Part shown: piece by piece, positions 23,349-63,179 of the stretch
Layout of the letters: every line of letters starts with the position of its first letter
Position numbering within the stretch: the stretch's first letter is position 1
IMG/VR virus record: IMGVR_UViG_3300043436_004687
Location: 1 to 64,000 of that record
Direction: 5' to 3' (one strand)
DNA length: 64,000 nt
Notes under the pieces: model-generated
Told to the model about the DNA's origin: nothing
The model's database searches: none
The model's input: only the letters and a program-made list of their open reading frames with translations
Program-made: the position numbers and the translations under genes

Positions 23349-24286
23349 TAATTTTTTTTGTGTGGGTTAAAAATTATTTTTTTGGAAATGTGAAAGAAAT
23401 ACATAATATTTGAATAAATACCACATAATAAGTATGCTGTATTGCTAGTGGTAAAGCCCAATCATCTACACTCCAATTAATCTCAATACCATTATTGAAA
23501 CGAACGAAGCCGTTAGAGAAGCAAATATATTTCTTTTTAATTTTCATCTACTCTCCAATTAATTCAACATTATGGGAAAAAAAAGCTTTAATTATTGAAT
23601 ACATTGATTCCGTTTTTTCAAGCTTTTGTTGATATCTGAAGTTAAATTTAACAATTATATAATTTTCCCCAGTTTCATAAATATTGCACCAATTATCATT
23701 TTGACCACTAACCAATTGATAACGTTTATTACCACCAGTTTCTTCATAATGCCACCATCTCCCACTCATTAATGGATTTTCCATTTCATGTTTATGTGGA
23801 ATAGAACCACGAAGACAAATAAGAGTTGCTACATTTAAAATGTCTTCTAAAGCAGTATTAAATTGGTGTTTAGTTTCTCCGAAAATTTTAAGTTTCATAA
23901 TTTTATTAATTGATTAATTGATTAAACTTTTTTCTAATAATGCAGATATGAAATCTAAAGTTTTACCGCTTTTAAAACTTATTTGAACTTTATATTCAAA
24001 AACTTCAACTACACGACCTTTACCAAATTTAGGGTGATTAATTTCTTCATTAACTATAAATTCTCTTTTTGATTTAATTTGTTTAACTACTTTTGGTCTT
24101 CTAGTCTTTTTTAAAAGTGTTAACGGAAAAGCGCCATATTTTCCAAATGCGTGAGGTACACTTGCAACATTTTTCATTTCCTCAATTTCAAATTGCATTT
24201 GAATCGCAAATGGAGATGAATAACAAGTCGTGACATAATCACCTAACGTTAAATTTTTACCCATAATTTTTATTATTTTAAATTAG

Positions 24287-24359
24287 TGCCCCCAAAAGGA
24301 TTTGAACCCTTAACAACCCCTCCGTAAGGGGCCATTTTATCCAGTTAAACTACAGAGGC
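24287..24359 (-). tRNA. tRNA-Arg(ACG)
   Basis: Cloverleaf; anticodon arm GCCCC-TTACGGA-GGGGT; T-loop TTCAAAT; several G-U pairs in the acceptor stem. Confidence 0.85.
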
Positions 24360-24435: not shown

Positions 24436-24867
24436 TTATTTGTGAGAATAAATACCACCACATTTTCTACTACAACAGATTTTTTTATTTAAATGTAATG
24501 CTTTATAAGAATTTTTTTTACTCCTATTAAAAACTTTTTTACATATAGGACATTCAAATTCAATTAAAATTTCTGTCAAATTATAAAAAGCATTTTTTTT
24601 AATGTTATTATCTTTTGATGATAAAATTTGTAAATTTTCTATAACATCATTTAATTTATTATTATCTATATGATCAACATGTTCTTCAAGTTTTAAATAT
24701 CTATTTAAATGAACAGCCATTATATATCTAGCATATGCTGTTGAAGTTTTAGTCCCATCATTCCTGATTAATAATAAAGTTCTACGAGGTTCTTTATTTA
24801 TATTTAAATAACCTATTTTAAAATCTTTATTATATGGTGATTTTAATTCTATTTTTGTATTATTCAT
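24436..24867 (-). CDS. HNH homing endonuclease in a tRNA cluster (start likely 24867)
   Basis: EHVDHIDNNKLNDVIENLQ; C-terminal CPIC..CCSRKC. Confidence 0.85.
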   Translation of the reverse strand: MNNTKIELKSPYNKDFKIGYLNINKEPRRTLLLIRNDGTKTSTAYARYIMAVHLNRYLKLEEHVDHIDNNKLNDVIENLQILSSKDNNIKKNAFYNLTEILIEFECPICKKVFNRSKKNSYKALHLNKKICCSRKCGGIYSHK

Positions 24868-24869
24868 AG

Positions 24870-24946
24870 TGGTCTTGGACAGAATCGAACTGACATGTGA
24901 CCAATTACCCTTTCTACGCATTATGAGTGCGAGGAGATACAAGACC
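24870..24946 (-). ncRNA. Atypical tRNA-like RNA with CAT anticodon loop and no D-arm in the canonical position
   Basis: Perfect acceptor GGTCTTG/CAAGACC+A, T-arm GTCAG-TTCGATT-CTGTC, CGCA-CTCATAA-TGCG only 9 nt after the acceptor. Confidence 0.7.
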
Positions 24947-25630
24947 ATTTGATTACCTTAAAACTCAGTTGCAATACACCCAAGAAAACTAATAATCCGA
25001 AGTTTATTTAACAATCTAAAAAAAATTATTTCTTTAACATTTTTAATAATTCCTCATCAGAAACAGTTGTAATTTTTTCTTCTTTTCTTCTAGCAATTTC
25101 AGCAAGAATTTTTTCATTGTGTTCTTTAACACTCTTAGCATTTTTCAATACTTCATTCTCCTCAACTTTAGTGGTAAGAATATCAACCACAATATCAAAT
25201 CTTAATTTTGTAGTTTTATCTTTTTCAGATTTTTTAACTAAGAAAGATTTTTTTCCAGAATCTTTATATTCCGTTTCTAATTTTACAGCTAATTCATCTA
25301 ATTCAGGTAAATCTAATTCCCATAATTGTTCAGTTGATAACAAACCTCTATTAGTTTGAAATCTTAATTTTTGTCTTAATGCCTCTTTAAAATCGCTCAT
25401 AATTCTTATTTATTTTAATTGTTATTATTCTTTATTTAAAAATGGATTACTTTATAATTCTTATTTATCTCCCGTAATGTAGCATATTCGACTCACTCGC
25501 TTCGTCTTATATAAAGCCCCTCACGATTGGGTTTACCCATTTAAATTTACTCATCTTTAAGCCTCTCAGTTTTCGTTCTGTTAGAGTTGAGGCAATTAAA
25601 TAACTAGGCGACCAAGCACAATGTATTTGT

Positions 25631-25848: not shown

Positions 25849-27978
25849 TTAATTAAAATTAACTTTTATTGTTCTTTTAAAATTACCACCCAATTTTAGT
25901 ATTACAGAATCTTTAACCGTACTATTAAAACCTAACCCCGATAATTGTTTATCAGTAGTTTCAATCATATTAGTATTACCTAACACTTCCATAACTCTTT
26001 TATGTTGGATAAGTTCATCATTTAAATTCTCATTATGAAAACTTCTAATACTTGTAGGTGCTTTACAACCCTCTAACATGAAGAAAAAATGTTTATTCCC
26101 AATATTATTATCACCCCAATGATTTGGTGAAAGACTGATAAGATTTACCTTATGGAACTGATTAGTTTCAAGAGAATAAATTTCTTTATTCACACCCACA
26201 CCCTCAGTAGCTGGGATTAAGTGTTTTATTGAAAATTCACCATCTTTAAGGGTAACCTCAGCAATATGTAAATCTCTGGTTACATAGTTACAATAATCAT
26301 ATGTATAAATTTGATTATTAAATTCAACCTCAGCTTTAAAACCTTGATTATTACCACCGTCATAATTTCTGATGAAGAATTTATAAACACCATCTTTCAT
26401 TTTAGATTGATCATCCCAAACAATATTTTCAACACCTAATTTACCAGGTCTAATCATATCAACATCTAAATTACCTGACATACTAGTTTTATTACCTTTT
26501 CCTTTATAAGAACCATAATATATTTCTGTTCTGTTTGGTTCAATTGTATGAGCATCAAAATCTAAAATATCCCTTCCATCCTCATTCCAAGTAATTGAAA
26601 ATCTCAATACACCATCAATCTTACCACCAGCAGTTTTAACAGCTTCTTTTATTTGAGACTTACCAGCTAAATTACCATTAAATGTCCATGAAAAATTATT
26701 TTTCCATTTAAAAATAGGTTTACTATCTGGGATGTTAGCAGTAGTTAATGAAACAAAATTACCTTCATGTCTATTTTCTAAATAAGCTTCTACAGAAGTA
26801 CAACTTGGTAATATATCTTTCATGAATTTATCAATTGAGACTTCTTCAACACCTTCAAACTCGTTCTTTTTGTGTTGGCTTTTTGTTGCTTTTACACCAT
26901 CAAATATTGAAACTGTTTTAATGCCATCTTTACCAATATTACTATGTAGAATTTCAGATACTTTTATATCATTCATTGTTGCAAATCTTCTATCAAAAGA
27001 TTCAACATAACCATTATCTTCAACAAATTTTCTAGCCTCTTCAATTTGTTTTGTTGTAATAGGTGCTGTAACTTTCATATAATTTCTTGGGTCTACTCTT
27101 TTGTTCCAATCTTGGCACGCTTTATTTATTTCTAACCCTAGTGATAAATCTGAACATAAAACACCAATTAATTCATTTTTAAATTTAGCAAAAGGTAAAT
27201 TGTATGAATTAATCCAACACCAATTATCTCTTTCTTTAGCAGACAAAGCATCATATTGTGTTTTAAGTGGAATAAATTGTTCAACCTTATATAAATGAGT
27301 TTGACCATCTAACAACGAACCTTGATTGATTAAATCTCTAACCAAATTTAAAGTATCTAACGAAATTTCTTCCATAGCTCTTTGAAATACATTTTTAGCG
27401 TCTCTATAACCACCCATTAATGATTCAACTGATTTTCCACTTACATCAACAAAATTTTTATTTAAGAAAACATGGAAATGATTGAAGACATAAATATCTT
27501 TAGTATTCACCACACCAAATTTATCAACTTCTTCTTGCGTATATTGTTTGTGATTCTTCTCATGACCTAATTGAAATTTAGTTTGTGTTTTAGAACACTT
27601 TTCATAAGGTAGTGAATTTAATTCATCAAATGTCTCAAAAAAAACTTCACTTACTTTAGATTGAGAAATTAACAATTGAACATTTTTGATGGCATCCTCA
27701 TAAGTAGTACCTTCCACATCAATATCAAACATAGAAATGATTTTAGATTCTGGAGTAATAGCCACAACATTACCATATCTTCTAATGAAGTTTTTATCAT
27801 TGTTACAATTAGCTTCAGATGAAGCTGGGTCTCTAAATATAGGGTTTTGACCAGGTTTAAAACCACCTAAATAAGCATCCCAGATTTGTTGACCAGTAGC
27901 TTCTAATCTAAACAATTTGTATTGTTGCATAACATCAAATTGTTTCTGTATTCTTAAATTTAATTCTTTAAAATTCAT
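25849..27978 (-). CDS. Large conserved phage protein with a TerD/YfaP-like beta domain
   Basis: FSITWNED..LDFDAH..LDVDM..GVENIVW segment; assignment from recollection. Confidence 0.5.
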   Translation of the reverse strand: MNFKELNLRIQKQFDVMQQYKLFRLEATGQQIWDAYLGGFKPGQNPIFRDPASSEANCNNDKNFIRRYGNVVAITPESKIISMFDIDVEGTTYEDAIKNVQLLISQSKVSEVFFETFDELNSLPYEKCSKTQTKFQLGHEKNHKQYTQEEVDKFGVVNTKDIYVFNHFHVFLNKNFVDVSGKSVESLMGGYRDAKNVFQRAMEEISLDTLNLVRDLINQGSLLDGQTHLYKVEQFIPLKTQYDALSAKERDNWCWINSYNLPFAKFKNELIGVLCSDLSLGLEINKACQDWNKRVDPRNYMKVTAPITTKQIEEARKFVEDNGYVESFDRRFATMNDIKVSEILHSNIGKDGIKTVSIFDGVKATKSQHKKNEFEGVEEVSIDKFMKDILPSCTSVEAYLENRHEGNFVSLTTANIPDSKPIFKWKNNFSWTFNGNLAGKSQIKEAVKTAGGKIDGVLRFSITWNEDGRDILDFDAHTIEPNRTEIYYGSYKGKGNKTSMSGNLDVDMIRPGKLGVENIVWDDQSKMKDGVYKFFIRNYDGGNNQGFKAEVEFNNQIYTYDYCNYVTRDLHIAEVTLKDGEFSIKHLIPATEGVGVNKEIYSLETNQFHKVNLISLSPNHWGDNNIGNKHFFFMLEGCKAPTSIRSFHNENLNDELIQHKRVMEVLGNTNMIETTDKQLSGLGFNSTVKDSVILKLGGNFKRTIKVNFN

Positions 27979-51126: not shown

Positions 51127-51196
51127 TATAGATTAAGGGATTCGAACCCTTGGTTATCAAAGTATTGGTTCAGCAAAACCACTCTGCCAAACCCAT
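51127..51196 (-). pseudogene. tRNA-Ser(GCT)-like sequence lacking the 3' half of the D-arm
   Basis: ATGGGTT/AATCTAT acceptor, TGGCAGAGTGG, TGGTT-TTGCTG-AACCA, AAGGG-TTCGAAT-CCCTT. Confidence 0.6.
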
Positions 51197-61578: not shown

Positions 61579-61650
61579 TGGTAGTGAAGGTGGGATTCGA
61601 ACCCACAAACTCCCTGTTTCTAAGACAGAATACTCTACCGCTTCTTAAAT
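61579..61650 (-). pseudogene. 3' part of a tRNA (TAG anticodon, short variable loop, CCA) whose 5' acceptor strand lies at 63081-63087
   Basis: GCGGTAGAGT, TCTGT-CTTAGAA-ACAGG, GTGGG-TTCGAAT-CCCAC, CTTCACT-A-CCA; complementary GGTGAAG only beyond the tnpB element. Confidence 0.7.
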
Positions 61651-62894: not shown

Positions 62895-63095
62895 AAAATT
62901 TTATGGGTATATTAATACCCTGTTATTATAAATATAAGAATAAATTTAAAAAGTTCAATATTATTATGTTAAATTTAGTTAAAATTATACATTATGGTTT
63001 TAAATCTATTTAATTGTTTATGTTTGTATAAGATTGTTTAGATAATTAGTTTCTGTTACTAACCCTTCGTTTTAATAGCACTTCACCATATTTTG

Positions 63096-63179
63096 TAACC
63101 CTGACAAGATTCGAACTTGCAACCCATTGAGGGACAGCATTCTAAGTGCTGCGTGTATAGCCATTTCCACCACAGAGCC
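63096..63179 (-). tRNA. tRNA-Leu(TAG)
   Basis: CAGCA-CTTAGAA-TGCTG; long variable arm; GCAAG-TTCGAAT-CTTGT. Confidence 0.92.

Follow-up and report, generated by a model that had tools for sequence, protein, structure and literature searches.

A putative phage tRNA with a rearranged D arm

A tRNA-like element that standard searches miss

The 77-nucleotide element at positions 24870-24946 (- strand) of a jumbo phage genome has well-preserved acceptor and T arms, but its anticodon arm lies where the D arm is normally expected, and a D-loop-like segment follows it. Is this a tRNA gene that has been scrambled and is decaying, or an intact RNA in which the parts of a tRNA are joined in a different order? 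The window analyzed here is the first 64,000 nucleotides of a 339,635-bp IMG/VR virus record (IMGVR_UViG_3300043436_004687) that has direct terminal repeats and 26% G+C and comes from lake water; all positions are those of the window unless stated otherwise, and element position i equals 24947 minus the window coordinate.

Read on the - strand, the element starts with the 5' strand of the acceptor stem (GGUCUUG, 24940-24946, element positions 1-7), which forms 7/7 Watson-Crick pairs with CAAGACC (24871-24877), followed by the discriminator A (24870), with no CCA encoded. The acceptor strand is followed by U8 A9 (24938-24939) and six further bases (UCUCCU), which include CUC (24934-24936, positions 11-13). 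The anticodon arm (24917-24931) consists of the stem CGCA/UGCG, four Watson-Crick pairs plus a flanking U.U, and the loop CUCAUAA, with U33, A37 and the anticodon CAU at 24923-24925. Next come the linker UAGAAA (24911-24916, positions 31-36), GGG (24908-24910, positions 37-39), the D-loop-like segment UAAUUGGUCA (24898-24907, positions 40-49), which contains analogs of A14, R15, G18, G19 and A21, and the connector CAU (24895-24897). The T arm (24878-24894) consists of the stem GUCAG/CUGUC, with four pairs and one U.U, and the loop UUCGAUU. The element lies in a small tRNA cluster: a canonical tRNA-Arg(ACG), detected by ARAGORN and by the Rfam model (49.8 bits), is located downstream on the same strand (24286-24359). 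An open reading frame (ORF) of 143 amino acids (24436-24867, - strand) that encodes an HNH endonuclease (Pfam HNH_3, E=1.3e-5) starts with an ATG at 24867, 3 nucleotides after the discriminator base.

These observations bear out an earlier note, made from the sequence alone, that described preserved acceptor and T arms, a CAU arm ahead of a D-loop-like segment, and additional pairing that extends the anticodon hairpin. However, the anticodon arm starts 8 nucleotides after the acceptor stem, rather than 9 as stated there, and the proposed pairing of UAUCUCCU with AGAAAGGGUA holds only for the 3-bp core CUC/GGG (C-G, U.G, C-G), which is the part that covaries in relatives (see below).

ARAGORN predicts 9 tRNAs in the window and 13 in the complete genome but not this element. 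The Rfam tRNA model (RF00005) aligns with it end to end, with a score of 28.8 bits (E=0.0015 in 1.4 kb) against the gathering threshold of 29 bits; in this alignment, the D arm is deleted, with 15 model positions replaced by 4 nucleotides, and 18 nucleotides are inserted in the variable region. Folding of the single sequence yields an energy not significantly better than that of shuffled sequences (z=-1.24), a megablast search of the 2-kb neighborhood against GenBank phages yielded no match, and a scan for promoters and terminators around the element detected nothing above chance. The sequence alone cannot tell a working RNA from a wreck, and the case rests on comparison.

A large family with covariation in every helix

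A search with a pattern derived from the anticodon arm and the T loop initially identified two more copies in viral contigs, with acceptor and T stems that differ from those in the window but still pair. After removal of seven hits that represent a coding repeat, the family, which could not have been recognized from the single sequence, included more than 110 copies in phage contigs and 73 distinct sequences that align over 77 columns without a single gap; one copy with a truncated acceptor strand was left out of the alignment. A covariance model built from the family scores the window copy at 89.3 bits (E about 1e-18), within the family range of 84-100 bits, compared to 24 bits or less for every other tRNA in the 339,635-bp genome.

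We assessed the pairing in this alignment for a structure defined by us, consisting of the acceptor stem (1-7/70-76), a 3-bp helix (11-13/37-39) enclosing the anticodon stem (16-19/27-30), the T stem (53-57/65-69), and one tertiary pair (42-52). Altogether, 96.7% of the cells are paired, compared to 67% after shuffling and 38-46% when the partners are slid by 1-3 columns, although the sequences are related by descent, so that the shuffle statistics overstate the significance. All 7 acceptor pairs, all 4 anticodon stem pairs and 4 of the 5 T stem pairs show double changes; the U.U at the second pair of the T stem is shared by 8 of the 73 members. In the enclosing helix, pair 12-38 is U-A in 43 sequences, C-G in 24, G-C in 4 and U.G in 2, with no mismatches; further members add A-U at pair 12-38 and either A-U or U-A at pair 11-39. 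Pair 42-52, which joins the purine after the A14-like base and the base immediately before the T stem, is A/U in 55 sequences, G/C in 12, G.U in 1 and other in 5, a pattern that matches the Levitt pair R15-Y48. The column pairs with the highest mutual information are exactly these pairs, and RNAalifold predicts the enclosing helix de novo. U8 and A9, which lie outside the search pattern, and A77 are invariant. The linker is invariant as well, apart from A or U at position 32, and a scan requiring a base other than A at position 36 found no true member, only two chance matches. However, much of the core (positions 31-51) was fixed by the search pattern, so that its invariance is partly by construction; only positions 38, 42 and 48 were free in this region, and the partners of positions 38 and 42 (12 and 52) lie outside the pattern.

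The nearest relative of the window copy differs from it by compensated changes in the acceptor and T stems. The closest relatives of this phage, as judged by a neighboring 709-aa protein, have no syntenic copy next to that gene, but the closest one carries a GAU member beside tRNA-Trp in a different tRNA array. Only DNA runs, from lake water, were found to contain this phage; inspection of contigs showed no variants but did show that other contigs in the same lake carry the same core with different arms. Among 185,579 species genomes of cellular organisms, the pattern was detected only on 9 contigs, all from MAGs; eight of these were confirmed by the covariance model, and the five that were inspected lie beside tRNA genes. 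These are presumably phage contigs or prophages.

Anticodons and genomic context are consistent with a role in decoding

All members found have NAU anticodons, with 105 UAU, 12 GAU and 7 CAU copies, and two scans that required a different anticodon next to the same core found no true member, the one match being a chance occurrence in a coding sequence. Most copies lie 3-8 nucleotides from a neighboring tRNA on the same strand within phage tRNA arrays. In the cultured crAss-like phage Kehishuvirus tikkala, the element exactly fills an unannotated 90-nucleotide gap between tRNA-Trp and tRNA-Met. Furthermore, the anticodons complement those of the canonical tRNA-Ile in the same arrays. In the 20 loci where a UAU element has a canonical tRNA-Ile nearby, that tRNA is always GAU, never UAU; with a GAU element, it is UAU in 5 loci and GAU in 2. 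Some arrays of 13-20 tRNAs contain no other tRNA-Ile.

In the long ORFs of the genome analyzed here, ATA accounts for 33.5 per 1000 codons (38% of the Ile codons and nearly twice the frequency of ATG), and no other tRNA-Ile is detectable in the genome. The window CAU copy is probably a tRNA-Ile2, in which C34 would be converted to lysidine by the host TilS so that AUA is read; given that the rest of the family is isoleucine-type and that the phage needs AUA decoding, we consider this somewhat more likely than not. The less likely but possible alternative is an elongator tRNA-Met, because MetRS reads CAU directly, one locus carries two different CAU members, and the genome encodes another CAU tRNA (genome positions 224906-224977). 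Ile2 cannot be distinguished from Met by sequence alone.

An arginine-type family with the same topology

A descriptor scan of the collected loci, followed by one more scan of the sequence collection, uncovered a second, 80-nucleotide family. All parsed anticodons in this family are those of arginine (UCU 26, ACG 8, UCG 3, GCG 1, CCU 1), and ARAGORN misses 41 of 47 of these elements. Here, the nesting is explicit: two bases after U8 A9 pair with two bases after the D-loop-like UAAYUGGA, and this 2-bp outer D stem covaries, with pair 10-48 being GC in 22 sequences, AU in 13, CG in 3 and UA in 2, and pair 11-47 being CG in 28, AU in 5 and UA in 4. The anticodon hairpin, extended by pairs 12-38 and 13-37, sits between the 5' strand of this stem and the D loop. 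The chain order is therefore D-stem strand, anticodon hairpin, D loop, D-stem strand, connector, T arm. In the isoleucine-type family, the equivalent outer pair might be U10-A49, but both bases are invariant.

The D-loop-like segment retains the amino-acid-specific base after GG. In the canonical phage tRNAs from the same loci, this base is A in 97 of 112 tRNA-Arg, U in 46 of 50 tRNA-Ile, and A in only about 5% of other tRNAs. The arginine-type elements found without that constraint all have GGA, whereas the isoleucine-type elements have GGU, as in the window copy, or, rarely, GGC. A blastn search found matches to the arginine-type family in 286 Vibrio phage records, 6 Pseudomonas records, 2 records of Microbacterium phage Pumpernickel and one Maribacter phage record; none of the listed matches has an annotated feature under it, and only the copy in Vibrio phage D419 was read through. 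None of ten elements of either type in eight loci other than the window reached the Rfam tRNA threshold, whereas 79 canonical tRNAs in these loci did.

Predicted structure and alternative explanations

The sequence comparison shows a three-way junction that includes the normal 7-bp acceptor stem, the normal T arm, and a long hairpin in which the anticodon stem-loop is extended by the 3-bp helix, with the bases that normally form the D loop (UARUUGGUNA) displaced to the 3' side of this hairpin, just before the T arm. We infer that the 3-bp helix stacks on the anticodon stem in the place of the D stem and that the displaced D-loop bases still make the usual core and elbow contacts (U8-A14, R15-Y48, and G18/G19 with the T loop). 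In the core of a canonical tRNA, such as yeast tRNA-Phe, residue 9 appears to lie against pair 12-23 and residue 45 against pair 10-25, with A21 and residue 48 next to the 8-14 and 15-48 layers. The three new chain joins would therefore link residues that are already neighbors in space, and the stack from the junction to the anticodon loop would have about the canonical number of layers. An L shape that RNase P, the CCA-adding enzyme, a synthetase, EF-Tu and the ribosome can use is thus plausible but remains an inference. In the absence of data on expression, processing, CCA addition, modification or charging, the comparative evidence nevertheless makes us fairly confident that this is a functional decoding tRNA with a non-canonical chain topology, in agreement with the non-canonical Met/Ile2 tRNA that was the first option offered in the earlier note. 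The U.U in the T stem and the U.G in the enclosing helix of the window copy somewhat weaken the case. Our leading guess as to why phages keep this topology, for which there is no evidence, is escape from host tRNA-targeting nucleases or other host factors that depend on the D arm.

Other explanations appear less likely. A tRNA mimic or decoy that folds like a tRNA but, instead of decoding, soaks up a host anticodon nuclease, another tRNA-targeting defense or a modification enzyme is not excluded, although we consider it unlikely. The unusual core could make the RNA a poor substrate for translation while keeping the anticodon loop and the acceptor and T arms, tRNA-cleaving defenses exist, including one that cuts a variable loop (PMC13096335), and the element lies next to a homing endonuclease gene. 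However, a decoy gives no reason for the anticodon to complement the canonical tRNA-Ile in the same array or for the element to be the only isoleucine-type tRNA in arrays of 13-20 tRNAs; the discriminator A, U33, A37 and the perfectly covarying acceptor stem are what charging and EF-Tu binding need; and the D-loop-like segment keeps the Ile- and Arg-specific base after GG. A cis-acting role, as a tRNA-like 5' structure involved in the processing or translation of the endonuclease mRNA or as the homing site itself, is suggested by the HNH start codon located 3 nucleotides after the element, with no Shine-Dalgarno sequence in between. This role is improbable because, in the other members inspected, the downstream neighbor is another tRNA or an unrelated sequence; HNH genes scattered among phage tRNA genes are commonplace, and Kehishuvirus has one elsewhere in its array, so that the adjacency in the window looks incidental.

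The failure of ARAGORN to detect the element, the Rfam score just under the threshold, the unremarkable folding of the single sequence and the presence in the same genome of other degenerate tRNA-like pieces (61582-61639 and 51127-51196) might suggest a tRNA-Met/Ile pseudogene scrambled by deletion or insertion, perhaps, when the HNH gene inserted. This possibility is contradicted by the more than 110 copies in unrelated contigs that keep the same layout, with compensatory changes in every helix, by the score of the window copy, which is like those of the rest of the family, and by the GAU member in a relative of this phage; the diversity of the acceptor and T stems also argues against a very recent spread of a single mobile sequence. 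An ordinary D-armless tRNA or a class II tRNA, in which the 22 nucleotides after the anticodon arm would be merely a long variable region or arm, is how the Rfam alignment treats the element, but this reading is also improbable. The only possible stem of a variable arm requires position 41 to pair with position 48, which varies among U, C, G and A without compensation, whereas the segment is near-invariant and D-loop-like, its purine covaries with the base before the T stem, and its 5' flank pairs with bases upstream of the anticodon arm; in the arginine-type family, the covarying 2-bp stem closes the anticodon hairpin and the D loop together.

Relationship to known tRNAs and implications

With canonical bacterial and phage tRNA-Ile, including tRNA-Ile2 and phage tRNA-Ile(UAU), the family shares the 7-bp acceptor stem, the discriminator A, the 5-bp T stem with a UUCRANY loop, the anticodon loop CU-NAU-A, the D-loop bases A-R-UUGG-U-N-A, covariation of the R15/Y48 type, and a place inside phage tRNA arrays. 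It differs in that there is no D arm between position 9 and the anticodon arm, with only 6 nucleotides separating A9 from the anticodon stem, and in that the equivalents of the D-stem strand and D loop follow the anticodon arm, so that the junction is three-way rather than four-way. D-armless mitochondrial tRNAs, such as mammalian mt tRNA-Ser(AGY) and nematode mt tRNAs (PMC7609411), also lack a D arm in the usual place and have the anticodon arm after a short connector, but those tRNAs have lost the D-loop bases and are described as flexible, whereas this family keeps a conserved D-loop-like segment with GG and a full T arm. Moreover, it occurs in phages of bacteria, and all known bacterial tRNAs have been stated to have the canonical cloverleaf (PMC11551756). 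The allo-tRNAs from metagenomes with 8/4 or 9/3 acceptor/T branches and tRNA-Sec (PMC5389517) are likewise missed or mis-called by standard tools, but those change helix lengths and keep the order acceptor-D-anticodon-variable-T, whereas here the helix lengths are canonical (7/5) and the order is changed. In the circularly permuted tRNA genes of Cyanidioschyzon merolae, the acceptor halves appear to be internal and the precursor is probably circularized and re-cut to yield a normal mature tRNA; here, both acceptor strands are at the ends, so the mature RNA itself must have the new topology. We found no description of this topology in the literature searched, including a 2020 review of non-canonical tRNAs, although subscription journals were mostly not covered and an earlier description cannot be ruled out.

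It is somewhat more likely than not that phages of many lineages, including crAss-like phages, marine and lake phages, jumbo phages, and cultured Vibrio, Pseudomonas and Microbacterium phages, use a second, previously unrecognized tRNA architecture in which the anticodon hairpin is nested inside the D arm. On this view, at least two large families, isoleucine-type and arginine-type, cover the AUA and AGA codons that AT-rich phages use heavily, and, because standard tRNA finders mostly miss them, phage tRNA repertoires are systematically under-counted; the altered core may make these tRNAs resistant to host tRNA-targeting defenses, which would be a new counter-defense principle, or independent of D-arm-dependent host factors. 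If these RNAs are charged and used, the L shape can be built in nature from a chain topology other than the order treated as universal for cytoplasmic and bacterial tRNAs, with implications for tRNA evolution, for what synthetases, RNase P, EF-Tu and the ribosome actually require, and for the design of orthogonal tRNAs. Hundreds of phage genomes, including those of cultured carriers, namely, Kehishuvirus tikkala for the isoleucine-type and many Vibrio phages for the arginine-type, appear to carry Ile and Arg tRNAs that ARAGORN and the Rfam threshold fail to report, which affects analyses of codon usage and host dependence; for example, arrays that seem to lack tRNA-Ile apparently do not.

Related and aberrant tRNA-like genes

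The nested topology is not confined to the isoleucine-type elements. An 80-nt arginine-type family, with the anticodons UCU, ACG, UCG, GCG, and CCU, has the same topology, and its 2-bp outer D stem covaries. This family is represented in the loci L175-L291 (for example, L186:6491-6570, + strand, and L178:3917-3996, + strand) and in Vibrio phage D419 (OZ195672.1, about 65930-66010; 1168-1250 in locus L292). ARAGORN misses 41 of 47 of these elements; in the Vibrio record, the tRNA locus tags jump from 0009 to 0011 around the element. Longer Ile(UAU) variants of the same topology carry an extra hairpin, of about 17 nt, between the D-loop-like segment and the T arm; these were observed in four loci, namely, L035 (4368-4457, + strand), L172 (1610-1698, - strand), L171 (2165-2253, + strand), and L169 (5337-5426, - strand). 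The L035 contig holds at least five non-canonical tRNA-like genes within 1.2 kb.

Among the Ile-type members in the 73-sequence alignment (A2), 25 of 73, mostly from one large group of near-identical contigs, keep a pyrimidine-pyrimidine mismatch (mostly, U.U) at acceptor pair 6-67 (alignment columns 6 and 71; for example, in loci L039, L043, and L048). The crAss-like copies have two U.U pairs, 5-68 and 6-67. In the lake-water run (X4), two other contigs from the same lake, aligned to positions 24893-24939 of the window, carry the conserved core of the family, with 4 differences, joined to different T and acceptor arms. Several phages in that community therefore have the element.

The genome of this phage also contains other tRNA-like sequences. 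A 58-nt tRNA-like piece at 61582-61639 (- strand) of the window, with an Rfam score of 31.4 bits but not called by ARAGORN, has the loop CUUAGAA (anticodon UAG, Leu) but no D arm and no D-loop-like segment, and carries 3 extra bases between the T stem and the acceptor strand. This piece is probably a degenerate copy of tRNA-Leu(UAG), which is present intact at 63095-63179. At 51127-51196 (- strand), there is an Rfam tRNA hit at 34.7 bits that is not called by ARAGORN either; the D and T arms look fine, but the acceptor and anticodon stems do not pair well. This could be a pseudogene. Outside the window, at 91990-92061 (- strand) of the same genome (contig G000:C1), an Rfam tRNA hit at 42.6 bits has a CCA (Trp) anticodon and an aberrant T loop that lacks UUC; this sequence is also missed by ARAGORN.

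Neighboring protein-coding genes

The longest ORF for the HNH gene, at 24436-24948 (- strand) of the window, would start at 24948 and read through the whole tRNA-like gene. The real start is more likely the ATG at 24867, which has no Shine-Dalgarno sequence upstream. A 709-aa ORF at 25849-27978 (- strand) contains no Pfam domain but is conserved over its full length, with 31-65% identity, in 34 other viral contigs, several of which are longer than 200 kb. This protein, although its function is unknown, is a marker of a jumbo-phage lineage.
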